Below are positions 5,202-23,200 of a DNA stretch of 64,000 bases, in pieces. The notes beneath the pieces are model-generated. The model saw nothing but the letters and a program-made list of their open reading frames with translations, ran no database searches and had not been told where the DNA came from. The stretch lies in assembly GCA_004431415.1 (NCBI GenBank), contig QPMI01000673.1:1-64000 (forward strand). The letters are read 5' to 3'. The translations under genes were made by a program, and so were the position numbers. Source of the stretch: Cyanophora paradoxa CCMP329 (lineage: Eukaryota; Plantae; Glaucophyta). Position 1 is the first letter of the stretch. Every line of letters starts with the position of its first letter.

Positions 5202-8141
5202 CTAGTACTCGGTGTCCGAGGAGGGGAGGGAGAAGTTGACGGAGGGGGTCTTCCAGTGGGCCATCTCCCGCGCGTACGTCTGCGCGAAGGCGACGAGCTT
5301 CTCGAGCTGCAGGCGCTGCAGGCGGGCGTAGAAGAGCGGGGCGCGGAGGGAGGGCGGGAGGCGGCGGGCGGGGTCCTCGCGGAGCCAGCGCTCGAACTGG
5401 CGGGAGTCCATGCGCATGGCGCGGGCCCACCAGGTCCCGTCCGAGAGCGGCTCCTTCGGCCCCTGCGCTTCCTCCCGCGCCGTCCCCCGCGCCGACTTCC
5501 GGCTCGTGCTGTGGCCCAGCGCCGCCCGCCCGCCGTGCCCGCCGCCCGCCCCGCCCGCCGCGTGCTCCACGTCGATGCGCAGCTGCTTCGGCGCGCCCCG
5601 CTTGCGCGCCGTGTGGGGGCCCGACGGGTGCGCGGGGTGCGGCGGCAGCAGGTCGGTGGCGATCTCGAGGCCGGTGCGCTGCTGCTCGTAGAGGCCGTGG
5701 AGCATCTGGTGGGCGTCGGGGGCGGCGGCGGCGGCGTCGCGCGCGGCCTCCTGCTCCTCGGCGGCCGCCTGCTGGGCGGCCTGGTCCTCCTCCCCGATGA
5801 GCTCGCGCCGCCGCCGCTCGTGGAGGACCTCCTCGAGGGCCTTCGGGAGGCCCCGCGCCCACTCCTTCAGCGCCTCCACGTGCTTCTTCCGCCGCGCCCG
5901 CAGGCTCTCCTTGATCACGTTGTACTTGATCCCCCTGCCCCCGCCCTCCCTCGGACTCCCGTCCCCGCGGGGGGGGGGGGGGGGGGGGCGCACAGCGGGA
6001 TCTCGAACTCAGCGGCATGGGCGGGTACGTCGGCCTGGCCGCGCTTGCGTGCCCGCGAGGGAGACCGCGCGGCGCCCCCGGACCCCGCCCCCTTCTTCTT
6101 CGAGGAGGCGGCCCCGGCGGCGGCGGCGGGGCCGGCGGCGGCGGCGGCGGCCGGCTTCTTCTTCTTCTTCTTGGCGCCCTTGGCGGAGCGGGCGGTGAGG
6201 CCCTCCTCCTCCTCCTCGCTCTCCGCGTCGAGGGCGTCCCACTGGAGCCGCACGAGCCGCACCTGGACCTCCCCGGCCGCCCGAAAGTCCCGCCACGTCC
6301 GCTGGATGAGCCGCACCCGCGCCAGGCACGTCTTCACCGCCCGCGTGATCTCCCCGAGGGAGCCCATCTTCGCGAAGAAGTCCCGCAGCACGCCCGCCGC
6401 CCGCCGCTTGCGCACGATGTGGATGCGCAGCCGCGCGACCCGCACGAACTTGTTCAGCGCCTCCATGTGCTTCTCCGCGTGCTGCGAGCCGCCCCGCCTC
6501 AGCGGCCGCCCGGCCCGGGGCGGAGAGGGCGCAGGGGACCTTTAGGCGGACGCGGGTCCACCAGCGCATGGCGAAGCGGCGGACGAAGCGGAGCCGCGCC
6601 TGCAGCCGCGCCTGCTCTAGCCGCTCCTGCCGCAGCCGCTGCGGGGCGAGGCGAGGGGGCCGTCAGCGGGGCGGGGGTGGGGCGGGGCTGGGAGCAGGGG
6701 CGGGCGGGCCTGGATGGCGGAGCAGAGGAGGCGGAGGCGGGCGGCGTGGGCGACGACGGCGGCCCACTCGCGCTGGCGGCGTTCGCGGGCGACGAGGGCC
6801 TCGTCGCGGAAGGCCCGCCGCGCGAGCACCGCCTTGTGCCGCAGGAACGCCTCCAGCTGCTCCCGCTTCCGCTCCTGCGCCACGCGGATCCGCTCCTCCA
6901 CCTCCTCCGCCCCCGCCTCGATGCGCAGCCGCCGCAGCTCCGCCGTGTACCGCGCCGCCTCCTCCTTGTTCCCCTCCACGTAGTCCACGCCGGGGGGCTC
7001 GCCGGGCGCCCCGTCGGCGTAGGCGAGGTCGGAGGCGTCGAAGGGGGCGTCGGCGTCGAGGCCGCCCTCCCCCGCGCTCGCCGAGCGCCGCAGCCGCCGC
7101 GTCGCCACCCGCGTCACGATCACCCGCGGCGCCCGCCGCCGCGGGCCGCCCCCGTTCGCCCCCGCCGCCTTCGCCGCCGCCGCCGTGAAGTCGAAGCGGT
7201 CCGTGTACGAGAAGGAGAAGGAGGGCCCCCCCGTCCCGATCGAGGTGGGCGGGACGTACGCGCCGGGCCCGGGGGTCTCGGGGCGGGAGAGGAGGGCGGC
7301 GCCCGGGACGGGGGAGGCGAGGTCGCAGATGCGGGACTCGGAGAGGCGGAGGAGGGCGGTGCGGGGCCGGGGCATCCCGAGGGATTTGGGGTTGTAGGTG
7401 CCCGGGGGCGGCCCTGCTTCCTGGCGGTGCCGCGAGGCGATCGCCTCCTGCGCCGACACCGACTCCGGCGAGATCGTGTACGCCGGTCCGCTGTCCCCGG
7501 ACGCCCCCACCCGCCGCATCACCTGCCCCCGCCCCTCAGCGCCCCCGCCCCCGCCCCGCCGGAACGGGCACGGGCGGGGCGGGGCGCACGAAGTACTGCC
7601 CGGGGTCGGGCTTCTTCTCGGGGCGGGCGGAGAGGGTGTAGTCGATGGCGCGCCCGATGTTGTCCTTCCTGATCGACGGCGTCGAGACCTTGCGCTCCAG
7701 CAGCTTGAAGCCCGGGTTGTACTTTCCTGGCGGCGGCACGTCCTCCACTGCCCCCGCCCCGCTTCCGTCAGGCCCAAGACGGCCACGAGGGCTTAGCTGA
7801 CGCATCCCGGCGTCCCGGCGGGGCTGAAGGCGCTTAGCTAAGCGCACGCACCCTTCTTCCAGGCATCGCGCGGAGGCGGGATGATGCGGAAGACCGGCGC
7901 GAAGGAGCGGGGACCGAAGGACGTCGGCGCATCGTACAGGCCCGGGCCCACCCGCCCTGCCGGGAGGTGCGTCAGCTAGCGGGCGGCAGGTCTGTGGAGC
8001 TTTCGCAACGGCGAGCCGATCGGTCCGCTGGCTAGCTAGCTAGTGGCAGGCCCGTGGAGGTTTCGCAACGGCGAGCCGATCGGTCCGCCGGCTGGGCGCC
8101 GGCCGCGCACCGTCAGAGGCTGATCTAGAGAGCCCGTTCAT
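5202..8141 (-). CDS. SHIPPO/ODF3-like PGP-repeat protein with coiled coil and an IQ-like motif (likely flagellar)
   Basis: Spliced exons contain VGPGLY, PPPGKY, PDPGQY, PPPGTY and PGPGAY repeats, plus VRLIQRTWRDF. Start approximate. Confidence 0.65.
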
Positions 8142-8561
8142 GGTCCGTTGCTCCCACGACTGGGAGGAGCGCCGAGCTCCGGCAACGCGTCCTCGCCAGC
8201 GCGGCAACGGCAGGGGCTGTTGCTCGTTGAAGTTTTTTTCTTGGCGTCTAAAGGAGCAAGCGGCTAGCGCACAGCGCGGCCAGCGAGTACTAGTATAGAC
8301 AGCTCGTTCTCGATATGTGTACCCGGCAAAAGAAAGCGTACCCGCTGTCACCGCGCCTGCACGAGACCGACATCCAGGACTCGGCGCTGGACAACATCAG
8401 GCTCGGCGAGTTCGACAACATCCTTGTGATGCGTTGGAAGCGCTAGATTGGTCCCGGCATCTTTCAACGCCAAGGTACGCAGTCCCGGAGTCCGCCAACT
8501 TTTCGCGGCCGGCCTCCGAGCCCACCTGTTCATCGCGGCCGGCCTCCGAGCCCACCTGCAG

Positions 8562-10300
8562 ATGACAAAGCCGCGGCTCGCCCGCGTTCTGTCCATAGAC
8601 GGCGGCGGCGTCCGGGCGCTGCTCGCCGCGCGCCTGCTCGTGCACATCGAGGAAGTCACGGGCCAGAGCATCGCCTCGAACTTTGACCTGATCGTAGCGA
8701 GTGGCTCTGGCGCGCTGCTGGCGACGCTGCTGACGCTGCCGGGCAACGACGGGCGGCCGCGCTACACCGCCCGCGAGGTACTTGAGCTCTTCAAGAGCAA
8801 CGCCCGCCGCATATTCCCCACCGTGCGCCCCACCGCGCCCTCCCTGCGCCCGGCGCGGCGGCCGAGCGTGGGCGGCGGCGGGCGGGGCGGGGGCGCGCAG
8901 GGGGACTGGTCCTCGTGGCTGCGCTCGATGGACCCCTTCTACCCCGGGGGCCGCTTCTCGAACGAGGGCCTGGTCTCGTTCTGCGGGCAGACCTTCGGCG
9001 AGCTGCCCATCTCCTCCCTGCTCATCCCCGTCACCCTTTTAGCCTGCGACATCACCACCCGCTCCCCCGTCCTCCTCCGCAGGCCCGCCCCGCACCGCCC
9101 CGCCCCGCCCCGCGCGCCAGAGGAGAGGGCCGAGGGGCCCGGGGCGCGCAGGGAGGGTGTGACCGCGGACCTGCGCCTCCGCGACTGCGCCATCGCCTGC
9201 GCCTCCACGCCCGGGTTCTTCCCCCCCTGGGTTGTCGGCGGCGTCTCCTGTGTGGACGGTGCCGGCCCCCCCCGCCCTCTTCCTCCCGGGCGGCGTCGGC
9301 TGAGGGGGCGGCAGGGATCGTGGTGGCGTCGAACCCGTCCCTGATGGCGCACTGGGAGGCGAGGGGGATGTTCCCCGGGGCGCGCGACCTGCTCCTCATC
9401 TCCCTCGGCTGCGGCTCCGTCGAGCGCACCGTCTCCCACGCCGAGGCCTCCTCCTGGTCGACCGCCGAGTGGCTCAGCCCGCTCCTCTCCGCCTGCGTCG
9501 AGAGCAGCGGGGCGGCGGTGCACGTGCTGATGCAGCAGCTCGCGAGCGAGCCGCCGCGGGCGCCGCGCGCCTCGTCGCCCAGCGTGCTGCCGCTCCCCGG
9601 CATAAGCGGCTCCAGGCGCCAGGGCATCCTCTACCGGTGCGCCCGCCCCGCACCCCCCTCCCCCGCAGGCGGCGAGCGCCGCGCAGGCGCTACCAACCGC
9701 GCATCGCGCTCCCGGTGGGGCGCGCCGGCGAGCCCTCAGACGCCGACAAGCCCACCCTCGAGTTCCTCGGTGCCCCCCGCCCGGCCCCGCCTCCCCGCCC
9801 GCGGCGGCGCGCCCTGAGGCCGGGCGGGGGGCAGAGATCAGCGCGGAGGCGTTCATACGGGAGAACGAGGAGTCGTTCGCGGCGCTCGCGCACGTCGTCG
9901 CCCAGGGCCGCCCCGCCCACCCCCGCGCCGCCGGCCGGCGCTCCCCCGGCGAGCGCCCCCGCGCCTACTCCTCGGGGGCCTTCTACTCCAGCGGGGCCCT
10001 CTCGCCGGGCTCCAGCAGCGGGGCCCTCTCGCCGCGGGGGGCGGCGCTGAGCGGGCGCGGGGGGCCGGCCTCCCACTTCGACCCCAGCATCCCCTTCTTC
10101 GCCGAGGGCGGCCTCGGCGCCGGCCGCACCTTCCCGGGGCCCATCCACGCCCCCTTCGCCCCCGCCCCGCCCCCCGGCCCCGCGCTCCACCCCTACGGCG
10201 CGACGTACCCCTGGGACCGGCAGGGGCGGCCGGTGGAGGCGTCCCCGCTGCTGAGGCTGCTCTCGTGCGGGGGCGTGTGCTCGAGCGCGTGCGACACGCA
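8562..10300 (+). CDS. Patatin-like phospholipase domain protein with a non-canonical nucleophile elbow
   Basis: VLSIDGGGVR, FDLIVASGSGALLA, ASTPGFFPP, VDG..SNPS and LISLGCG motifs across exons. 3' end uncertain. Confidence 0.85.
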
Positions 10301-10656: not shown

Positions 10657-11081
10657 CTACTGGTCGAGGCGGGCGAGGGCCTGGGGCACGGCCATGACGA
10701 CGGAGGGCGAGGCGCTCTCCGCCGCCCCCCGCCCCTCCACCTCCTCCGGGCGCGCCGGGGGCACCCGGAAGGAGGCGTGCAGCGCCACGAGGGCGCAGCT
10801 CGTGCCGAGCAGCCACGTGAAGGTCGACGAGGCGCCCGTCGCGAAGAAGAGCAGCACCGAGGCCGCCCCGCACGCCGCGAGCTTCTCCCGGTACGTGAAC
10901 GCCCGCCCGAAGAGGATCAGCGGCTGCGCCGGCTCCGCGCCGCGCCCGAAGAGCTTATACCACATGAAGAAGACGCCGAGGAGCGCCACCAGGCTTATCG
11001 GGTGCTGCGGGGCCGGCGTCACGCGCATTTTGACGGGCACCGGTGACCAGAGCAACGGACGAGCAGCATTGCAATTGCGGC
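10657..11081 (-). pseudogene. PRA1 (prenylated Rab acceptor) gene, C-terminal half, separated from its N-terminal half by the insertion
   Basis: AAIAMLL, then a GT-AG intron at 11060-11005, then HPISLVALLGVFFMWYKLF...LVALHASFRVP, the PRA1 C-terminal signature. Confidence 0.85.
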
Positions 11082-11838
11082 AGCTACGGACCCAGCATTG
11101 CGTGCCGGCGAGCAGGGGTTGCCAATGAAACACGGGCAGCAGCAGAGGCAGCACCACTGATTGGCGACGCCGCCCCCGTCGTCATCGTCGTACATACGCC
11201 CGTAAGGATTCATGCCGTAGCCGTACGCGCCAGCAACTGGTATGCCCATCGCTACGCCAGGAGGCGGCGCGTTTGGTGCGGCTGCATTGCGGTCATCAAC
11301 TCCAGCGGCAGCCGCGTGCGAAGTCTGCTGCAGCAGCGTCGCTGTCGACGCAGGAGGAGAGGCGGGGCCGCCGGGATGCTGCTGCTCGGCCTGCGCGGAG
11401 TGCGAGGCGAGCCCTGACGCAGGGGCGATCCCGACGGGCGGCTGCAGATCTGAGGTCGTCTGCAGCTGCGAGCCCGCGTCTCCTACCGCTGTAGCTACCG
11501 GTGTAGCTGCTGGCGCCTCCGGCTGGCGCGGATCGGGAGGTGCACTCTGGAACCGCGATGGTCCCGCCTCCGAGGCTGCGCGAGTGGCCGTGCGGCCACG
11601 GGTCTCGACAACCATGTTGCGTACGGCCGGAACGCTCGCGAGTTGACCTAAGTAAACAACTTTACTATCTAGAAGTGTTGGGTCACGCGGGGCCGGCGCG
11701 CCTAGAGTGCCATATTGCAAAGCACCAGGCCCTCCAGGCGCGTATTGAATGGGAATTGCATACTGCATAGTGTCATCAGGAAGAGTTTCTTTGCAGGGCG
11801 CAGCGTCTGACCTGAGCGGCGACGTCGTCGGGCGCCAT
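11082..11838 (-). CDS. Captured 5' fragment of a Pro/Gln/Ala-rich gene with a Cys-rich segment, in frame with the PRA1 C-terminal half
   Basis: ATG at 11838 (MAPDDVAAQ), a GT..CAG intron, then YAIPIQY...QWCCLCCCPCFIG running in frame into AAIAMLL. Confidence 0.55.
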
Positions 11839-11929
11839 GGCGTCCACCCGTGGGCGCCGCTTTAAGGTGTGCGCTTAGCTAAGCCCAGGGAGCTCGTCGA
11901 ACGTGGGCCGTGCGGCGCCCAGCTTTGTA

Positions 11930-12037
11930 GGACGAAAGTTGGACGAAAGTTGAGGTTTGATGGACGAAAGTTGGACGAAAGTTGGACGAAAGTTGAGGTT
12001 TGATGGACGAAAGTTGGACGAAAGTTGGACGAAAGCT
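11930..12037 (+). repeat. Subterminal direct repeats: 8 copies of GGACGAAAGTT with two GAGGTTTGAT spacers
   Basis: Read directly in a 2+3+3 arrangement; the last copy is GGACGAAAGCT. Confidence 0.95.
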
Positions 12038-12422
12038 CACAGTTGCAGTACCCCTTCACGCCCGCAGAACGGACAGCTGCGGGGCCCTGCGCGAGCCGGC
12101 TACGCCGACCACGCCGGAAAACAGCGCTACAGTGAGCCTCCCCGCGCACTGCGCCTTTCACCCCGCTCACGCCCCACACGGCCAGCCTCCCGCGAACGAC
12201 CAGGAATGAACACGGTGCGCCGCACGAAATCGCGCGTACTGCGATACAAACGAGCACGACCCCCGCTAGCGCACGTATGCTAGCGCTCGCCCCGCCCCGC
12301 TCTCGCGCGATCTGGCCCGACGCCATCCCGGCTGCTTTCGCATCTGCCCGCTCGATCGACCGCGGTCGCCTTTTGCTTTCGCCTTTGCCCGACTGACGTG
12401 CGCCCCCCGCCCCCGGCGCCAG

Positions 12423-15400
12423 ATCGGCCCCGCCGTCTGGGGTGCCGCCGTCTTGGGGCCCCGCCTCGGGTTCATGAACGAGGGCAACGCGTGCTACGCC
12501 ATCGTCGTGGTTCACTGCATCGCCACCATCCAGACCATCGTCGCCGCCCTCGGCACCGAGAACTGGCAAGGCGGCGTCGCGGGACAGCTGCGGGAGCTCG
12601 TCTTGCAGGCGCGCGGGGGGCGCGGCGCCCCTGGGAGCTCGAACGCTCGCTAACGAGGCGCAGGTGTGCGAGGGGCGTCCCAACGGGGGAGGCGACGTGC
12701 ACTCGTGCCAGGGGCTCAAGCGAGCGGTGGCGGCCGCCGATGCCGCATCCGGCTCCCCGCCCAGAAGCCCGTGGGAATCGCCGTTCTGGGGCGCAACTCA
12801 GCAGGACGCGTACTTGTTCTTCGTGAAAATGTGCCAGGAGCTACCCAAAGCGGTAAAAGCCCGGCCCGCGCCCATCGCCCCCCCCAGCGCCCTCGGCCCT
12901 CACGCCCGCGCACCGCCCGGGCAGGTCCAAGCAGCGTACACGTTCGGTGTCCGACGGGACACGAAGTGCGAACGATGCAAGTACACGTCCGCCGTCTTCG
13001 AGGAGCAGGGGGACATCCCCGGCTCACTCCCCCAGTCGAGCGGCGCCCCGACGCGCTCCAGCACCCTTGATCTCCTCCGTCGTTACTTCAAGGTGCGCGA
13101 AAGCGGAAACGCCGGCGCTGCCCCTCGCAAAAAAACGCCCCGGGCGTCGCAGGCGGACAAATTCAAGTGGACCCCCTGCTCTGAGTGCAAGGTGGATACG
13201 GATGGGGCAGTGTTGACCCGGCTCGACGTCAGCACCCGCGACGGGAAGGGGCAGCCCCGCGCGCCGCTGCCGCCCGCGCTGGTGGTGCACGTCGGACGCT
13301 GGACCGACGGCTCGGACGCGCAGAAGCGCTACGACCCCGTCTACCCCGACAAGCGCATCGACCTCACCAAGCTCGGGAAGAACGCCTTCTACCCGAACCT
13401 GCCCGAGCCCGGGAGCGCAACGTACACCCTCCGCGCCGTGCTGCGGCACCACGGCCTCACGCTGGCCGGCGGGCACTACACGGTCCGTTCCCTACCCGCA
13501 TAGAACGACACCGCGCCCGTCTCGTCGCCTCTCCCGCCCGGATCGACCCCGCCCGCAGGTCGACGTGCTCTGGAACGGGAAATGGAGCCGGTGCAACGAC
13601 AAGAGCGTCACGCAGGCGAGTCTGGACCGCCCGCTGCGCCGCGCCGCGTGGGGCAGCGGGGGAGCGCCCTGTTTTTACAAACCAGGCGACGGCGTCCGCA
13701 GGTGATGGAATCGGAGGTCCTCGGCGGAGGCGGCGACGCGTACATGCTCTTCTACGAGAAAGAAGAGCACGTCGGCGGCGGGCTGGGTCCCTCGGCGTCG
13801 AGCCCCGGCCCCTCCCCGCCCGCGGTCGCTCCCGCGTCGCCATCCTACGCCGACGCGGTCCGGGGCCCGCGGGCGGCGGAGCCCGCCGCCGCCCCGGAGC
13901 AGGCGGCAGCCGGCCGCCGGCTGCCCCAGCGCCGGCGCAGGCCAGCTCGCAGGCCGCCGCCCCGGCGCCGAAGCGCGGCAGGCCGGCTCCGGCCAAGGCG
14001 GCGGCGGCGGAGGAGGAGGAGGAGGAGGCAGCGCCGGCGACGGCGCAGGCCAGCTCGCACGCCGCCGCCCCGGCGCCGAAGAAGCGTGGCAGACCGGCGA
14101 GCAAGGCCGATACGGCAGCGGCGGCGGAGGACGCGCCGCCGACGGAGTGGGCGGCGTGCGATGGGTGCACGAGGTGGCGGCGGCTACCCGCGGGGACGCG
14201 CGTCGCGGGCGGAGCGTCGTTCTACTGCACGGACCTCCGCGGCATCACCTGCGAGACCCCCGAGGACCACTGGGACGACGAGGAGGAGATCATCGCGGAC
14301 AGCGCACAGGCCGCCGCCGCCCCGGAGGCAGCGACGCAGGCCAGCTCGCCGGCCGCCCCCGACGCCCCCGCCGCCCCGAAGAAGCGGAGCCGGCGGAGCA
14401 AGGCGACGGGGGCCGCCGCCGCCCCGGAGCAGGCGGCAGCCGGCTCGCCGGCCTCCCGGCCGCCGCCAGCTCGCCGGCCGCCCCCGCCGCCCCCGCCGCC
14501 CCGAAGAAGCGGGGGCCGCGGAGCAAGGCGAAGGGGCCGCCGCCGCCCCGGAGCAGGCGGCAGCCGGCTCGCCGGCCGCCCCGGAGGCAGCGACGCAAGC
14601 CAGCTCGCCGGCCGCCCCCGCCGGCCCCGCCGCCCCGAAGAAGCGGGGGCGGCAGCAGGCGGCCGAGGCGAAGGGGGCCGCCGCCTCCCCGGGCACGGAG
14701 CAGGACCCGGTTCGCGGCCCTCGCGACCCTGCATGCGCTCCAGGCTGACATCTTGCCAGGAAAAGGGTGGCGGACAGGAGCAGCAGCAGGAGAAGAAGAA
14801 GAAGGGGAAGCAGAGGTCGACGTTGGACCGCCACGACGCCCAGGCGAGGCCCCTCTCCCGCCCGCACCGCCCGCCCGCCCGCCCGCGCCTCCCAGACCAG
14901 TGCCGACCCCCGCCGCGGCCGCGCAGAGAAAGGAGCACAGCCTGGCGCGCAAGAGGAAGAGCGAGAAGCAGAACATTAAGGAGGCTAGCACGCAGCGCAC
15001 TCGCGCCCGTTGCGCCGCCCCGCATCTCTTACCCCGCGCCCCCGCGCAGAGAAAGGAGAAGGCGAAGAAGGGGGAGACCGCGAGGGCCGAGGCGAAGGCC
15101 GCGGACGCGGAGGCGACCCCCGCGGCGAAGAGTGAAGCGCCCGACGCGTCCCCGGCACCGACCCGCCCCGACAAGGCCTTGAGCGAGGTCCGGCACGCCC
15201 CGCACTCGCACCCACCGCGCCGCGCGCCCCCCTGCGCCGCCACGCTCACCCCTGCGCCGCCAGGAGGAGGAGGAGGTGCTGGGCAAGAAGGGGAAGGCTC
15301 GGATGCAGGCGGCGAAAGAGCACCTGAAGCGGCGGAGGGAGGCAGCTGCAGCGGGCGAGGGGGCGGACGGCAAGGGCGAGGAGGGGCAGAGCGCCAAAAA

Positions 15401-18400
15401 GAAGAAGAAGAAGAACAAGAAGAAGAGCAACAACAAGAAGCCCCCGCAGCGCTGCGGCGGGTGCGGCGAGGCGTTCGCCGACGAGGACTACGCCGTGACC
15501 CCGAGCGGCCACCGGAGGCTGAAGATCGCGGAGGGCCACATCCTGCAGTGCGCGGCGGGCGGCGACGGCGACGGCGGCACCCACCACGCCCACCACGCCC
15601 GCTGCGCCAACCTCTGCGGCCGTTTCAAGGGCGTCCAGCGCGACGGCGACACCTGGACAGCCGTGTTCACGCGCGGGGACGGCGAGGCGTGTCCCCTCCC
15701 CCGTCCAGCCCCTCCCGCCACCCGCCCGCGCGCGGCCTGACCGCCGCCTCCCGCCCGTCAGACGGCGCGCGTCACGGGCCTTCGATCGCCTCGTCATCGC
15801 GGTGCACGGGCCGGAGAAGGCGCGGGACCTCACCAATTTCCCGCCGGAGCACTACAAGAGCCAGTGCTTCTTCCGGGGCCGGATCCCCGGCCGCGAGGAG
15901 CGGCCCGCCGCCTCGTGCTCCCTCGAGGCACGCCCGCATCCCCGTAGAAAAGGCGCACCCCTCCCTGCCCCTCCCTCACTCCCGCCCCTCCGCGCAGGAG
16001 ATCGCAGAGGCCGTCGGGGCGTTTGGGCGGGCCGAGGACGAGGCGCTGGCGAAGTGCGAGGAGGACGAGCGGGCGGAGGCCGCGCGGCTGGCGGCGGCGA
16101 AGTCGCCGTCCTTCGAGGTGGACAAGGCGGCTGCCGCCCTGAAGAAGAAGAGGGAGGACGCGGCGCGCTTCGTGGCGATGCGCCTGCAGCACTTCGAGGA
16201 CGCCATGGGCGCCTGGCCGTCGGGCAGGAAGAAGCGGGCGAGGCGGGAGGCGAGGACGCAGGCCAAGAAGAAGGGGATCCAGAAGTGCGCGGACGGCTGG
16301 GTCGAGAAGGCGGCGGCACGGCTGGCGGCGGCCGAGGCGAGGATGGCGGCGGCCGCGGCCGAGGCCGCGCCGGGGCCGGGCGGGCGGCGGGGCCGGCGGC
16401 GCAGCCCCTGGTACTGCCCCTGCCACCGCCTCGAGCCCGGCAAGGGCCCGCAGGCGGTCGCCGCTGACGTGGAGAAGACGCAGAAGCTGTGCGGCCCGAC
16501 CGACCCTCTGCGAGCGCCGCCCGCCGCCCCGCCGACGCCCGCCCCGCAGCGCGATCAAGGAGGGCGACGTGCTGCCCGCGCTCGTGACGGTGGCGGAGCG
16601 CACGGGCTTCGTCTGGGGGATGGCGGCAGCGGCGCGGAGGGGCACCCTCGCCTTCTTCAACGAGAGAGTGAAGGAAGCCCTGAAATACGTGCGCGCTGCT
16701 CTCGCTCTCATCCTTCCGGGCTCATGCCCCCCGCAGATCTTCGAGCCGTGCAAAGGCAGCATGGTCAAGGTGACCGAGCCCTCCCTTGTTGAGCCATCGC
16801 AACCCCTGCCTCCGGGCTGACGACCGCGCCCCCGCAGATATTCCCGCCGGAGGGCGGTCCCAGGTGTCGGCGCTGCACCCCCGAGGCGAAGTTCGCCAAC
16901 ATGCGGCAGCTCGCCGGCCACACGCGCCGCTGCGTGCGCGCCGCCCGCCCCACCCACGCCGCTCACCTACGGCTCCATCGGGGCCCCTGCGCCGTCTTAC
17001 GTGCGCCCGTTCGTTCTCGGTGCGGGGACCAGCACGAGGGCGCGGCGCTGGACTTCCCAGGGCCGTTCGCGTCCTCCCACCGCCTCCTCGCGAACCTGCC
17101 CTACACCAACGAGATCCACGAGGTCCGAGATAGGGGCAAGATGCCGCCGCGGCCGGAGGGCGGCTACGCTGGAGCTAGCTTCATCATAGACGCCGTCCTG
17201 AAACAGCTGGATGAGCTGGGTGAGACCTCGCCCCCCCGACCCTGACCCTGGCGCGCGCGGAGGAGGGCGGTGGTGGCCTCGAGCTCACGGCCGGCGCGCA
17301 GCCCCCAGAGCGGAACAGGAGGGCGACCTCTACGACACCGTGAGGACGCGTGACGCGAAGACGCGGCGCACGGAGGACGGGGGCAAGGTCGCCCAAGCAG
17401 AGACCACTGCAAGTCCCCTCAGCGCCCTCCCCACGCTCCGCTAGCCCGCGCCCCCACCGCCCCCGCCGACTCTGCTGCAGGAACCCTCCTGGTGGGCGTG
17501 CGAGAAGTGCGGCGAGGAGTGCAACACCAGGAGCGGGCTGAAGGCCCACAAGCCGGTTTGCCCCTCCAAGAAGAGCAAGGTGAGCCTTTCTTTTTTTGGG
17601 GGGGGGAGGGGGAAGGGGAGGGAGGAGAGGGGGTGGAGGGGTAAGGGATGGGTTAGAGGGGGGGGGAGGCGGAGGGAGGGGGTGGGGGTGGGGGGAGGGG
17701 GAGAGGAGAGGGGAGGGGGGGAGAGGGGAGAGGAGAGGGGAGGGGGGAAGGGGGGAGGAGGGGGGGGGAGGGGGGGAAAGTTTTGTGGAGGGCCGCTCAG
17801 CCTAACCCCGCCCCTGCCGCAACAGAAGAAGAGGGCGAGGGGCGACGACGAGGAGCAGGACGACGACGACGACGGCGGCAGCGGCGCCGACGAGGGAGAG
17901 GAGGCGAAGGTGGGGGCGCAGGCGCCCACGGCGTGCAGGAGGCGTTTCCTCCACACGGAGACGGAGGAGGAGAAGCAGAGTGTCAGGGACGCCGTCGAGG
18001 CAGCCGCGACCGCCTACAACGGGTACCGGTTCGTGACCTTGAGCTTCCGAAAGCAGGTGCGCGCGATCCTCGCAGCGCGGTGGTACGCGGCTCCGCCTTC
18101 GTCCGAGCGCGTCCTCTCGCGCAGATCCTGGACCTCGACCCCGCCCAGCGTCGAGCTGCCCTGCGCATCATCATCGCCAACAAGGAGAGCAAGACCGGCC
18201 TCCGCCTGGCGCTCGAGCAGCTCCGCAGGGAGGTGCCCTCTGCCTCCCTGCCCGGGGGCGAACTGGGCGCGCCGCACGGCCGGCCGCTGACCCTGACCCG
18301 TGCCCTTCAGTTCGCGGAGGAGCGAGACAGGGAGAGGCGCAAGGAGGACCCCGGCTGTGGAAAGAAGACAAAAGCGGACAATGTGCTCAAAAGCAAGGTC

Positions 18401-20412
18401 CTCGACGCGATCGAGGAACAGCGCCCGACCAGCGTCGACGGGCTGATCGCGTGCAAAGTGCCCCGGGCCAAGGCCGCCAGCGCGTTCGGCAAGCGCCTGC
18501 TCGAATGCGTCAGCAGCCATGCAGCCGGAGCGCAGAGCAAGGCGCCGGCCCCCGTTCCCGCCACCCCGCCGGCTGCCCCGGCGCCTCCCGCCTCGCCCCC
18601 CGCCGGTACGCGCACCCCATTTATCACGCTCTGTACCCCCCGCAGAATCCCTCCCGACCCCTCCCGAGCAGGCGGGGCGGGGAAGAAGGCGGGGGGGGCG
18701 CGGGGGCCGACGGGCAAGAAGGCGAAGGGGACGTCGCAGAGGACGTCGCAGGGGACGACCCGGCCGCCGGCGCGGACGGCGCGCCGCCCCCGGGCACCGC
18801 CGCCGCTCCCGGTGGAGGAGATGCGCAAGATGCGCGATGCGTACATCTGCACGCTGCCCCCCGGGCAGTGGGATCGCTGCCTGAAGGTGGACTCCGCCAT
18901 AAGGGGCATCGCGCTGGACGACTATCTGGCCGCGCTCCAGCGGCAGTTCGAGCGGCACAAGCCCGTCGCCCAACTCAGGTGACGGGGGGGCGCGTTGCTC
19001 AGGGGCGCCCGTCGGCCTCCTGGACGTGACCCTCGCGCGTTTTCGCAGCCCCCGCAACTGGCACACCCGCGAGCGGATGTCCGCCGGTGTGAAAGGGTTC
19101 ACCTACAACCAACCCAACAGCGCGTTCTGGAAGGACTTCAAGAAAATGCGGACGCACGAGGGGAAGATGCCGGACAAGATCGACCACGACTCGCGGCTCG
19201 TCCTCGAGCGCAGCGGCAGGGCCTGGTGCGGTCACGAGGGTGCGGGCCGCGCAGCTCTGCCCGCTGAGAGCCCCCGCAGGTTCTGCGAGCCGTGCGCACC
19301 GAACGAGACCCGCGCGGCGAAGCGGGGCGGCGCCGCCGGCTACGCGCGGGCCACGGCCAAGGAGATCAAGCTGCGCGGCGGCCGCCTGATCGCGCTCGAC
19401 CCCGGGCTGCGTGACTTCCTCGTCGGCTTCGACCCCGACGGCTACGCCCTCTTCGTGCGCCTCCCCCTCCCCCCCGCCCCCGTTTCTCAAATAGTCTAAT
19501 CGTTAACGGGGCGCGTCGGCAGTTCGGGCGCGGAGAGCACTTCGCGCGGGAGAAGCGGCTACGGCGCGCGGACAAGTACGAGGCGCTGGCGCGGAACAAG
19601 GAGAAGAAGAGTGAGCGGAAGGCCCTCCCACAGCGCTCCTGTAACGCCCGCGGCCGCAGTCCCCCACGCCAAGCGGCGCCGCCTCATGAGGAGGGCGCGG
19701 CGGATCCGCGATCTGGAGCACAACAGGGGCACGGAGTTCATCCGCGGCGTCGTCCGGTGCGCTGCCCCTCCGCGCCCGCCGGCCGCTGCCGCTCCGAACC
19801 CCGACATAACCGCTCAGCTTCCTCGTGGAGAACTACACCGTGATCATCACGCCCGACTTCGGAACGAGCCGGATGGTCCGCCGCGGGGGTCGGGTTCTCA
19901 ACCCGTGGTGTGCCCGCGAGCTGCTCAAGCACCGACACTATGAGTGCGCCGCGCCCCCCGCCCTCCGCCGGGGAGACCCCGCGGGCCCCGAATCCGCCCC
20001 TCTCCGCCCGCAGGTTCCGCATGCAGCTGCTCGAGGCCGCCAGGCTCTGCCCCGGGTGCACGGTCCTCATCGTCTCGGAGGCCTACACCTCGAAGACGTG
20101 CGGGCGCTGCGGGGCGATCCACGACAAGCTCCGCTCGAACAAGACCTTCAAGTGCCCGCGCGGGTGCGGGTACGAGGCGGACCGCGACGTCAACGGGGCC
20201 CGGTGCGCTGCGCGCGCGGGCAGGCGGCTGCGGGGCCGGGAGAAAGAGGTTTGCCGTCGCAACGACTAACCCTACCCCGCCCCAGGAACGTGCTCCTGCG
20301 GGTGATCTCGGGCGTGGACGAGGGGCGCAGGCTGCCGGCCTCGGAGCAGGTCAAGCAGCTGATCTTCGAGATGCGGAAGGTCTCGCGAGCTGCAACCTCT
20401 GAAGAGGCATGA
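12423..20412 (+). CDS. Giant multi-exon USP - AT-hook - zf-CW - AP2 - Zn finger - Fanzor (HRDC insert) gene; true start probably upstream (~12070-12210)
   Basis: Exons chain through short GT/GC-AG introns with no intergenic gap. Several apparent frameshifts lie upstream of the nuclease core. Stop TGA at 20410-20412. Confidence 0.65.
12460..13765 (+). CDS. USP (peptidase C19) deubiquitinase domain
   Basis: Cys box GFMNEGNACY; QQDA; CERC and CSEC finger cysteines; His box YTLRAVLRHHGLTLAGGHYT; WSRCND; AYMLFYEK. Confidence 0.9.
14144..14275 (+). CDS. CW-type zinc finger
   Basis: EWAACDGCTRWRRLP...FYCTDLRGITCETPED matches the zf-CW pattern. Confidence 0.85.
15621..15855 (+). CDS. AP2-type DNA-binding domain, internally deleted
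   Basis: RFKGVQRDGDTWTAVF followed by RAFDRLVIAVHGPEKARDLTNFPPEHY; the central TAEEAA-like segment is missing, with a frame change near 15775. Confidence 0.7.
17928..20412 (+). CDS. Fanzor2 (IS607-TnpB-type) RNA-guided endonuclease domain
   Basis: N-terminus RRRFLHTETEEEKQSVRDAVEAAATAYN; IDHDSRL; RuvC-I IALDPG (D codon 19398); FLVENYTVIITPDFGTSRMV; HYEFRMQLL; rearranged Glu in VSEAYTSKTCGRCG (20078); FKCPRGCG; DRDVNGARNVLLR (20180-20188). About ten introns. Confidence 0.93.
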
Positions 20413-20627
20413 CCTCCGCCCCGCCGCCCCAGCCCCACCGCGCCACCGCCACCCCCCACCTCCCGCCTCCGCTGTCTCTACTGTCTGCGATACTGTCTGC
20501 CAGGCTGGTTCATGGTTGTTACCATCTTCGAATTCGTCCCCAGTGCAGGGTCTCGAGCTCAAGCCCACCCGGCCCTAGCTAGCCTTAGCTCGAGCTCGTA
20601 CCTCTTAATTGCTTACTTTAGCTATAG

Positions 20628-21180
20628 TCAATCGGCTAGCGCTGCGGCGCAGCTGCAGCTGCCACAGCCTGCCAGGCTGCAGCTGCAGGCTGCAGGCGCC
20701 GGCGGCAGCGCTGCGATTACGATCGTAATTAATTACGATCCGATCGCGAATCCACGTGAATATCAATCGGCTGCGGCGCAGCTGCAGCTGCCACTGGCAG
20801 GCTGCAGCTGCGCATGCAGGCTGCAGGCGCCGGCAGCGCTGCGATTACGGTCGTAATTAATTACGATCGCGAATTCACGTGATCATGAATATCAATCGGC
20901 TAGCGCTGCGGCGCAGCTGCAGCTGCCACAGCCTGCCAGGCTGCAGCTGCAGGCTGCAGGCGCCGGCGGCAGCGCTGCGATTACGATCGTAATTAATTAC
21001 GATCGCGAATCCACGTGAATATCAATCGGCTGCGGCGCAGCTGCAGCTGCCACTGGCAGGCTGCAGCTGCGCATGCAGGCTGCAGGCGCCGGCAGCGCTG
21101 CGATTACGGTCGTAATTTTTATAATTAATTACGATCGCGAATTCACGTGAATATCAATATTAATCAGCGCTGCGGCGCCT
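20628..21180. repeat. Palindrome-rich tandem repeat, ~130-bp unit x4 in A-B-A-B order
   Basis: Units begin TCAATCGGCT at about 20628, 20763, 20892 and 21022, and contain GCAGCTGCAGCTGC, ATTACGATCGTAAT and CACGTG. Confidence 0.9.
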
Positions 21181-22419
21181 TCGAGCTCGAGCTCGAGTGC
21201 GCGCTATATATTATATACCTAGTCCTGAATTTGCATACCTAGTCCTGATAAACAGTCCTGCCCCGGGGGCAGTGCAACCTCTGGTCTGAAGTCGGGGTGG
21301 GTCACGAGCCCCACCCCCTACGCCTCGGGAAAATCTGTGTCGAAGGCCCCACATGCTATGACAGGGCGTAGGGACTTTGAGAACCTGGATCATAGTATAG
21401 CTAGCGCTGTACGCACGTATACGTATACATGCATACATGTACATGTACATGTACATGTACAGGGCGTGGAGCTCGAGCTCGACTCTAGATCCGATGATCG
21501 ATATCTTGATCTAGATCTCGAGCTCCTCTAAAACTCCCTCGAGCTCGATGTATAAAAAGGCCGAGCTGCCTCGGATGGCCGCATTCTTCGCCCATCGCGA
21601 GAAAGGTGATCTTTGCTTTAACTTCCCACCCCCGCGCCGAAGCTGGGATCTAGATCTAAGCGGTAGTCCGGCGGTCCTCGCAGGTCAACACAGCAAAGCT
21701 GCGACGGCCGCCTCCGCGCGGCCGGGCGCGGCGTGTTCTGGTCCGCTTCGCCCGCGCGCGCCGCCCCGCGCACGTGCTCGCGCGCGTGCATGATATCATG
21801 CATATGATTCTCGCGCGCCCTGACTCCGGAAAATTCGGCCCCGCGCAGGGCGCTGCCTCCTAGGGGATTTGCGCTTCTCCGCGCAGGAACTCGTCGAAGC
21901 TGCCACGCGGTCCTCGTGAGCACACCCCGCGCAGCGCTAGCGCGCGCGCGACGTCGCGTCGTTCGCGTCGTTTGATTTTCTGGGCGCTTGTAATTCCGCA
22001 GATCTAGAGGCCCGCTTCGGCGGCGGCGACGAGTGCGCTCGCGGAATCTTTCGAATCATTGAATTCTTTTTTATTTTCGATTCTTATGCGCGTGTGCACG
22101 CGCCAGGCTCCACCCGCGATGCGTTGCGCAGCTCCTTCCCCGACCGAGGCCGCGCTCAGGTACGCGCATGCGCAGCGCGCGCGCACGCGATCGAGCTTGT
22201 AGAAATTCAAGCTTGCCTCTTTTTTAAGCTTCGGGCGCTCGCGGTCGAGCGCCGACGTCGCGCGCGCAGGGGTTCCGTATGGATCTACACGCGCCCCGCT
22301 CTGGCAGGCCACCCAATCCCTCTGTGCGCTCTTCGGCGAGCAGCACTCACATTGGGCACCAGTGCGCCCCCTTCGAATTCGTCTTCGATTTCGTATGTTT
22401 TCTATAATTAATTTGATTT

Positions 22420-22694
22420 CGCGCGCGGCGTCGCGCAGGCGATCCGCACGGATTGCGATGGCCCCAGTACCCCAGCTTCGATCCGACGCGGCTCGATGCG
22501 GCTCCACCTTACGCACCTTCGGGAGCGGGGGAGGCCCGGTACCGGTCTCCCGGTCCGGGGCTCGTTGGGGTTCCGGCCCCCTCGGGCAGCATTCCTCTCC
22601 CTTAGCGGCCAGTCCGTGGCGGGAACGGGCGAGCCTTCGGGCACGGCCCGCACCTCTGATCTTCCGATCTTAAGCACGTAGGGCAAGTAGACCT
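22420..22694 (+). ncRNA. Candidate Fanzor omegaRNA: scaffold to 22674, guide from the flank at 22675-22694
   Basis: Hairpin at 22439-22456; long-range stem CCCCAGC/GTTGGGG; two C(UUCG)G-capped hairpins (about 22512-22527 and 22626-22650) abutting the inferred right end. 5' end unknown. Confidence 0.6.
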
Positions 22695-22839
22695 AGGGTT
22701 TCGATCTCGAGCTTCGGTATTCGATTTCGATTTTCGACGTCGCTTGCCCATCTGACTGAGCCCATGGGTTCGACCGGCGGCCCACTGCTAGCCAGACAGC
22801 TGTTAGGGCTAGTCCAGATGTCGTTGGTCGTCTCTGAAA

Positions 22840-23200
22840 TGCAATTGCGGCCATGACGAGAAAGAGGATCGTGTAATTCCCCAAGAAGTGCGCCGCGTTC
22901 CGCTCGAGCCGCTCCCGCACCTCGCCGGCTGCCGGCGCGGAGAGCGACGACCTGACCGAAGAATCAGGGCCTCTGCTTAGTGAAGCGCAGCGCCCACAGC
23001 CCGCACCGGTCCGCAAACTCGTTCCAAGGGCGCATGTTAGTCATCGCCTGGGCCCAGAAGCCCGTCGCTCGTCCGTAGAAATCGATGCTGCCATCCGCCG
23101 CAGGCGGCGTCGGAGGCCGCGGCCCCGCCGGCGGCTCGTACGGCTGGTAGCTCGGGTACAGACCGTGGCTCGCGCTTGGCCCCGTCTGGAATTGTGTCAT
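22840..23200 (-). pseudogene. PRA1 gene, N-terminal half (disrupted)
   Basis: MRPWNEFADR|SSLSAPAAGEVRERLERNAAHFLGNYTILFLV is the PRA1 N-terminal signature. It now reads into the insert and stops at 22693. Confidence 0.88.

Follow-up and report, generated by a model that had tools for sequence, protein, structure and literature searches.

A single spliced gene inside a mobile element of the glaucophyte Cyanophora paradoxa CCMP329 encodes a USP deubiquitinase domain, a CW finger, further zinc-finger motifs and a Fanzor2 nuclease. The locus probably represents a non-autonomous Fanzor2 transposon, present in two damaged copies, whose only gene grew into a fusion of ~1,970 aa. An intact effector of this size is inferred from the two broken copies. 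The window analyzed here is the first 64,000 nucleotides of contig QPMI01000673.1 (assembly GCA_004431415.1), and all positions refer to it.

One spliced gene joins the USP and Fanzor2 regions

The gene occupies 12206–20412 on the plus strand and consists of 30 exons separated by 29 short introns, all on one strand. The introns have a median length of 70 nt, with 23 GT and 6 GC donors and AG acceptors throughout, in agreement with the initial annotation of same-strand exons joined by ordinary short introns. A candidate first exon with an ATG was tentatively placed at 12206–12214 (+), in frame with exon 2 over a GT–AG intron. A script-based frame check revealed that the exon chain can be read as one stop-free frame of 1,962 aa, in the order USP, two KRGRP motifs, zf-CW, AP2-like stretch, C2HC fingers, HRDC-like insert and Fanzor2. 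The originally estimated length of ~2,000 aa thus holds for the readable frame but not for the GC donor seen in RNA, which leads to a stop at aa 1095. In the public C. paradoxa model tig00021617_g22932, exon chain and junctions are nearly identical. Profile scans of the spliced model were performed exon by exon, and the public models were used for whole-protein searches.

Spliced RNA contigs tiled the region from linker exon 7 to RuvC without a gap and showed no second gene there; they were spliced at sites where the DNA contig was unspliced. A 268-nt interval of an RNA contig corresponded exactly to exons 14–16, and a 2,160-nt RNA contig aligned to exons 20–24, its length fitting exons 17–30. 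Separate USP and Fanzor transcripts, which would have contradicted the fusion, were not seen in the RNA contigs. Could gene prediction nevertheless have wrongly merged a USP-CW chromatin gene with an independent Fanzor2 gene next to it? We consider this very improbable. As previously annotated, there is no intergenic space between the USP and Fanzor2 parts, and the spliced RNA contigs reproduced the junction offsets that could be checked. Spliced contigs overlap one another from exon 7 to RuvC and, judged by their length, take in the long G-rich intron 19. Because the last USP motif and the CW linker share exon 7, a gene boundary does not fit at the USP end. On the other side, no single contig or molecule among those assembled ran from USP to RuvC, the contigs broke at the exon 7 repeats, and RNA depth was low across the USP end. 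The contigs were chimeras of both paralogs, the overhang at the exon 6–7 junction was only ~20 nt, and the usable reads and contigs began beyond exons 1–5.

Domain composition of the fusion protein

The USP (UCH) domain, identified by Pfam and by motif residues, spans exons 2–7 (12423–13760, +). It contains the oxyanion Asn (12477), Cys (12492), QQDA box (12799), His (13474), Asp (13598) and YMLFY (13738). The UCH profile matched with an E value of 1e-10 and 42–60 bits, above the cut-off of 23.9, confirming the annotated USP with catalytic Cys/His/Asp, and PDB sequences matched at 1e-8. The Cys box, QQDA box, CxxC pairs of the zinc finger, His box and Asp are common to this domain and the catalytic domains of USP15, USP2 and USP21, whereas the Cyanophora USP is very divergent and transposon-encoded. 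A phmmer search with the USP over 1.84 billion representative proteins returned neither close relatives nor a USP-Fanzor layout outside Cyanophora; below 1e-10, the query retrieved only its own protein, plus one spurious repeat protein.

Exon 7 (13702–14709, +) contains the end of the USP, Ala/Pro repeats, AT-hook-like KRGRP motifs at 13971 and 14082, and zf-CW at 14148–14260 (Pfam E 4e-8; 33.5 bits against a cut-off of 27.5). The zf-CW has four Cys and two conserved Trp and is a predicted reader of the histone mark H3K4me. Both the KRGRP motifs and zf-CW are therefore present as first described, but in the assembly they are out of frame with the USP, exon 7 carrying three −1 shifts near 13913, 14458, and 14535. 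Those near 13913 and 14458 are probably assembly errors. At the first shift, the paralog model stays in frame, and the RNA contig showed zero differences over 14108–14457, the zf-CW region.

Further downstream, a Cys/His cluster that is PHD-like by eye precedes an AP2-like stretch interrupted by intron 11 (15453–15830, +). The initial annotation named an AP2 domain here. Neither the split exons, the public model nor the undamaged paralog with exon 12 intact gave a Pfam, PDB-sequence or fold match, and the identity was reduced to AP2-like. The likeness is at motif level, with a weak atlas lead (0.76) and a single-sequence model of pLDDT 45. The first C2HC-type finger (CRRC...HTRRC; 16865–16933, +) was recognized by motif only, with weak C2H2-type atlas leads. 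The second, annotated earlier (CEKC...HKPVC; 17499–17561, +), is present as a motif, but its Pfam zf-C2H2 match (E 0.004) was below the cut-off. An HRDC-like helical domain with a low-complexity linker (18389–18511, +) seemingly lies inside the REC lobe. Its Pfam HRDC matches (E 7e-4 and 1.7e-4) were both below the cut-off, and the Fanzor2-like profile match picks up again beyond it, at 18875.

The nuclease probably starts with the WED/REC lobe at 17937–18232 (+), where the profile match is weak; a Fanzor2-like homolog profile matched exons 20–21 at E 0.098, measured on the paralog. The core from REC/WED to the stop extends over 18875–20412 (+), with the stop codon at 20410–20412. The RuvC residues are D 19398 (ALDPG, the RuvC-I DPG), an alternative E 20078 and RuvC-III Asp 20186. 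The canonical RuvC-II Glu site is Pro (19852), and the alternative Glu lies six residues ahead of the zinc finger, the rearranged RuvC-II that, like the DPG motif, marks the Fanzor/pro-Fanzor clade. Pfam Cas12f1-like_TNB matched at E 1e-15, and the C4 zinc finger and RuvC-III RD are present. All catalytic and zinc residues, invariant across 97 homologs, are kept, and the pattern of Yoon et al. (PMC10711439) fits once the second Cys pair is allowed as CxxxC. The best PDB match by sequence and by fold was the mimivirus Fanzor2 9B0L (E 1e-13 and 2e-12, respectively), and the Fanzor1 proteins SpuFz1 and GtFz1 ranked 17 or lower by fold. By sequence and fold ranking, the nuclease is Fanzor2 and not Fanzor1, as originally proposed. 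Approximately 400 compact Fanzor2 homologs were found, with identities of 31–45%. An LRGG ahead of RuvC-I, considered as a self-cleavage site, was not significant (0.12 expected by chance).

Ends and insertion site of the element

An exact 12-bp target duplication (left copy 11070–11081, right copy 22840–22851, both +) bounds an insertion of 11.76 kb that splits a PRA1 gene mid-exon, with PRA1 halves at 10660–10995 and 22852–22953 on the minus strand. In silico excision of the insert together with one duplicate restored the PRA1 frame. Together with a right end common to this copy and the paralog, these features bear out the mobile-element setting. Possibly the duplication was made by an outer insertion and not by the Fanzor element.

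The inner element has a candidate left end at TTAAG (11862–11866, +), which is also a putative TAM. Eight copies of an 11-bp motif lie ~65 bp inside this end (11930–12037, +), resembling the phased end motifs of IS607 elements (PMC6188088). A 16-nt match to the left end at 7832–7847 is an intronic palindrome and was taken as chance. Past the gene, a palindrome-rich 3' region of lower GC contains a 259-bp tandem duplicate (20628–21178, +). The right end (22420–22674, +) finishes in TTAAG (22670–22674) and is a candidate omegaRNA scaffold, with a putative guide start near 22675; its fold was no better than shuffles (z 0.81), and Rfam gave no match in the 3' region. The element ends lack a TIR and have TTAAG in place of a GG crossover; an empty insertion site of the inner element was not seen. 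From the stop to the right end and at the left end, no ORF had a Pfam match, and neither a transposase nor the serine recombinase TnpA was found there; a recombinase was likewise absent from the surroundings of the two compact homologs that are closest.

Damage in the two known copies

A single further copy was found, tig00000880_g5166, in which exon 12 is intact but RuvC is lost: its ALDPG is joined straight to sequence matching 22487–22552. By segment, it is 91–96% identical to the copy in the window. The latter has a 29-nt deletion near 15775 in exon 12. Because the deletion was found in both short-read DNA and RNA contigs, it is real, and an assembly slip was ruled out. The two RNA contigs that carry the allele of this copy splice at the GC donor 15687 and are frameshifted in exon 12; deletion and donor together give a premature stop at aa 1095 (16465–16467, +), ahead of the nuclease. 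The GT donor 15689, used as the main donor in our first model, was rejected by the RNA contig offsets. Most likely, this copy today yields a truncated USP-CW protein or none, and a full-length effector is probably not made from it. Among 34 readable codon differences between the copies, a listed subset, 13 were silent versus 24% silent sites, transition bias being ignored; past purifying selection on the fused gene may be hinted at.

It is unlikely that this copy makes full-length USP-CW-Fanzor2 through the GT donor 15689, or that this or another strain has a third, intact copy, either of which would give a working chromatin-adapted RNA-guided nuclease. The GT donor exists and is used by the public model, and its stop-free frame costs only part of the AP2-like stretch. 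The USP, CW, and RuvC residues are undamaged in this copy, nuclease exons beyond the paralog's breakpoint are present in spliced RNA, and contigs drop minor isoforms. However, it is the GC donor that both RNA contigs of this allele use. As for a third copy, DNA depth reached 100 over 18889–19440, compared with 64–79 in shared regions and 36–47 in single arms, but across most of the gene the depth is that expected of two copies, and the protein searches found two proteins only, with no intact copy carrying both exon 12 and RuvC.

Comparison with known systems

Among proteins of 1,011–3,218 aa, searches with the nuclease and middle regions retrieved only the two Cyanophora models, along with a long Naegleria Fanzor that lacks a USP. 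Layout searches of this kind overlook distant relatives, proteins of other lengths and intron-rich genes that have no annotation. In the literature, with candidates judged by title and abstract, we found no paper on Fanzor in Cyanophora and no USP-Fanzor fusion. The earlier statement that no USP-CW-AP2-Fanzor fusion had been described agrees with these searches, which gave none outside Cyanophora.

The Fanzor2 proteins ApmFz2 (mimivirus, 9B0L), NlovFz2 and MmeFz2 and the IS607 pro-Fanzor TnpB likewise have the RuvC-I DPG, alternative Glu, C4 finger and RuvC-III Asp. ApmFz2 is compact (520 aa), its extras being only an NLS, RuvC-R and a thumb extension (PMC11832414). Unlike compact Fanzor2, the Cyanophora protein has ~1,360 extra N-terminal residues with the USP and zf-CW. 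It also differs from known Fanzor2 in its HRDC-like REC-lobe insert and in the 29 introns of its gene, and the element differs from Fanzor2/IS607 systems in having no serine recombinase and a right end ~2.2 kb past the stop.

Helitron-like HLE2 elements carry UCH, OTU, and Ulp1 domains as cargo (PMC11417382), and the Cyanophora element is likewise a transposon with a ubiquitin/Ubl protease domain as cargo. In HLE2, however, the protease accompanies a RepHel transposase, whereas in Cyanophora it is fused to an RNA-guided nuclease, with no RepHel. Chlamydomonas CRe-1/2/3 also combine an intron-containing algal Fanzor with a non-autonomous element and insertions with variable target duplications, but they are Fanzor1 in Helitron2 derivatives, and the available part of that source describes no DUB/reader fusion (PMC3627910).

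Gene capture is common in Helitron-like elements (PMC11417382), which is in keeping with a passenger origin: a Fanzor element would have captured, or landed in, a host USP or chromatin gene and been joined to it by read-through splicing, the joint function never being selected. The broken state of both copies, the long low-complexity linkers and the lack of conservation found outside the species also fit such an origin. We nevertheless regard it as rather improbable. The Fanzor part has ~10 host-type introns and the HRDC-like insert in its REC lobe, implying long residence, and the phmmer search with the USP gave no close host donor. Moreover, both copies keep the junction exons in frame, and it is the fused unit that was duplicated at a second site.

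Discussion

We favor the reading of a damaged, non-autonomous Fanzor2 transposon with one fused gene. In an active ancestor, Fanzor2 with a right-end omegaRNA would have cut vacant donor sites beside a TTAAG-like motif, and the element would thereby have been retained through TnpB-like homing. Attachment to chromatin may have been aided by the zinc-finger and reader modules, and the USP could have removed ubiquitin nearby, whether from histones, break-repair factors or the fusion protein itself, to the element's advantage. Such a protein could read histone marks and deubiquitinate at its target.

The value of the finding is lowered because both known copies are broken and activity is only predicted. 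Even so, several parts of the fusion lend themselves to testing: the divergent USP, the CW finger and the Fanzor2, with its tolerance of a large REC-lobe insert. Characterized Fanzor2 nucleases are compact, and eukaryotic chromatin and ubiquitin-driven break repair may hinder them; a deubiquitinase and a histone-mark reader fused to a transposon nuclease point to these obstacles. It is doubtful, though conceivable, that C. paradoxa or a sister strain makes a full-length protein in which an RNA-guided Fanzor2 delivers both a working deubiquitinase and a reader of methylated histones to the target site, possibly as one of several reader-Fanzor fusions that arose independently in this genome. If so, the full-length fusion would be a natural RNA-programmed chromatin or ubiquitin editor.

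Exon structure and domains of the fusion gene

A gene model of 30 exons was built by three-frame reading and splice-site fitting. On the forward strand it begins with a tentative ATG (12206), ends with the stop at 20412 and gives one fitted frame of 1,962 aa without internal stops. The 29 introns had a median length of 70 nt, with 23 GT and 6 GC donors and AG at every acceptor. Pfam, run on the separate exons rather than on the joined model, detected UCH (12664–13482, +, E 1e-10), zf-CW (14109–14309, +, E 4e-8) and the TnpB zinc-ribbon domain TNB (20015–20266, +, E 1e-15), while HRDC and zf-C2H2 scored under the cut-off. In addition, phmmer retrieved a 1,839-aa EukProt model of Cyanophora paradoxa, tig00021617_g22932.t1, with 99% identity to the USP exons. 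This model begins downstream of the Cys box, carries UCH, zf-CW, HRDC and TNB on one chain, and has nearly the same junctions as ours. The same-strand exon chain with ordinary short introns and the zf-CW of the initial annotation were both reproduced. One intron (17580–17825), directly before the Fanzor part, is G-rich and unusually long at 246 nt; judging from length, it is bridged by an RNA contig.

The predicted USP with catalytic Cys/His/Asp was recovered: the oxyanion Asn, the catalytic residues (Cys 12492, His 13474, Asp 13598), the QQDA box and the YMLFY motif are present. Its top relatives among solved structures were USP15, USP2 and USP21 (E ~1e-8), and apart from one spurious repeat protein, phmmer found nothing further below 1e-5 in 1.84 billion representatives. 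Judged by sequence, the USP domain is divergent.

In the middle region, Pfam, PDB sequence search and fold search gave no AP2 match, either in this copy or in the undamaged paralog, and the sole atlas lead for the AP2-like stretch was weak; the AP2 domain proposed earlier was therefore not confirmed. At the motif level, this region shows a PHD-like Cys/His cluster and two fingers of the C2HC type. The C2HC finger proposed earlier stands as a motif, with a zf-C2H2 score under the Pfam cut-off. By eye, a CxxC...C...HxxC cluster (15453–15610) and a distant WYCPCH motif (16409–16426) could be halves of one PHD-like finger split by the AP2-like/helical stretch.

With the C-terminal 390 aa as the query, ~400 compact homologs were recovered. 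The top PDB match was the mimivirus Fanzor2 9B0L in the sequence comparison (E 1e-13) as well as for the predicted fold (E 2e-12, pLDDT 79). This copy keeps DPG, a Pro at the position of the canonical Glu, the alternative Glu, the four Cys and RD, all of them invariant in 97 homologs, matching the Fanzor fingerprint of DPG, relocated Glu, Cys and RD residues (PMC10711439). Since the homolog profile starts weakly, as WED/REC lobe, at exons 20–21 and picks up again at 18875, the HRDC-like part appears to sit as an insert in the REC lobe. An LRGG motif resembling the ubiquitin C-terminus (19371–19382; chance expectation 0.12) lies just before RuvC-I, inside an insert relative to the homologs. A long annotated Fanzor2 of Naegleria lovaniensis (P0008, 1,242 aa), whose N-terminal extension has a weak Myb-like match, could likewise be a fusion, or else a merged gene model.

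Transcription and splicing

Reads of three probable RNA runs and one DNA run were compared over 13450–19440; exons 1–5 had no usable RNA coverage, and RNA support pertains to the later exons. The contigs of the probable RNA runs were spliced, and the DNA contig was continuous through the introns. RNA record offsets agreed with the model, with the 268 letters between 16488 and 17033 corresponding exactly to exons 14–16. One RNA contig of 1,960 nt fits exons 8–19, and another of 2,160 nt was placed on exons 20–24, its length fitting exons 17–30. A further contig crosses RuvC-I past the paralog breakpoint, with 675 letters remaining, where a spliced transcript should have 641 up to the stop. The exon 6–7 junction had only a short RNA overhang. 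Assembled RNA sequence is interrupted within the repeats of exon 7 and mixes both copies, and does not demonstrate one continuous molecule. The fusion is transcribed and spliced, with catalytic residues intact, in a duplicated non-autonomous element.

Integrity of the two copies

In the assembly, exon 7 contains three −1 frame changes, by which the KRGRP motifs and CW would fall out of frame. The first two are probably assembly errors, because both DNA (at a depth like that of the shared flank) and RNA carried an extra C at 13913, and because an RNA contig, identical to the reference over 14108–14457, diverges thereafter. A 29-nt deletion near 15775, flanked by two 14-nt repeats, is real, since it was found in the DNA contig and in RNA contigs of two runs; the third RNA run had the longer form at this site. 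All three RNA contigs used the GC donor of intron 11 at 15687 instead of the GT at 15689, and with this donor the frame of this copy shifts to a stop at 16465–16467 (aa 1095), before the nuclease. Hence the ~2,000-aa protein expected earlier can be fitted as a frame but is cut short with the donor used in RNA, and the nuclease, complete in its catalytic and zinc residues, lies beyond that stop. A minor in-frame isoform may exist.

The second copy, tig00000880_g5166 (P0007), has 91–96% identity to this copy by segment. Its protein model has the Cys box and the KRGRP repeats in one continuous frame, with a longer AP2-like exon, and ends at ALDPG, where it is joined to sequence equal to 22487–22552. 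The second copy accordingly resembles a derivative formed by internal deletion, and 22420–22674 would be the right end of the element that the two copies represent. The USP (12474–13760 against residues 1–305) is the most diverged part of the copies, at 91% identity compared with 94–96% elsewhere; the replacements cluster around the zinc finger and are in part a gene-model artefact. In a partial count, 13 of 34 codon differences were silent, against 24% expected, which hints at past selection. From these two complementary broken copies we infer an intact protein of ~1,970 aa; that a working full-length USP-Fanzor2 form exists is improbable.

The mobile element

An 11.76-kb insertion, bounded on either side by an exact 12-bp duplication (11070 and 22840), splits a PRA1-family gene mid-exon (10660–11081 and 22840–22953, −) and probably inactivates it at this locus. 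Together with the right end common to the second copy, this upholds the mobile-element setting. A patatin-like phospholipase gene (8448–9341, +, Pfam E 2e-16) lies upstream of the PRA1 gene. The insertion contains TTAAG sites at 11862 and 22670; the mobile unit may be the 10.8 kb that these sites enclose or the entire 11.76-kb insertion. Eight 11-bp repeats beginning ~65 bp inside the left TTAAG are reminiscent of the phased motifs at the ends of IS607 elements (PMC6188088). The left end and the stretch from the stop to the right end yielded no transposase ORF, and the right end matched no Rfam family and gave no folding signal.

The outer insertion around the TTAAG-bounded element (11082–11861 and 22675–22839, ~945 bp) is possibly a separate older element; a minus-strand ORF lacking introns, with its ATG near 11616, lies in it and encodes a Pro/Gly/Tyr stretch as well as a Cys-rich motif, but has no Pfam match. 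The region 20500–22400 has lower GC, 132 short palindromes per 2 kb compared with ~20 elsewhere, a 259-bp tandem duplicate and a TACATG microsatellite, and puts ~2 kb between the stop and the right end.

Novelty and possible role

No USP-Fanzor was found outside the C. paradoxa genome within the limits of the USP search of 1.84 billion representatives and of the nuclease and middle-region searches, nor was one described in the literature searched. Within the limits of these searches, the USP-fused Fanzor2 is a new form of Fanzor2.

In Fanzor2 and TnpB, a right-end RNA directs cutting of targets adjacent to the target-adjacent motif; zf-CW fingers bind methylated H3K4, and USPs cleave ubiquitin. 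The ancestral element may have homed into vacant sites, with the reader modules providing chromatin access and the USP opposing ubiquitin-dependent turnover, silencing or repair choice. UCH, OTU and Ulp1 domains are cargo in Helitron-like elements (PMC11417382); because ubiquitin/Ubl protease domains are known as transposon cargo, a selfish role would be more likely than that of a domesticated host editor.
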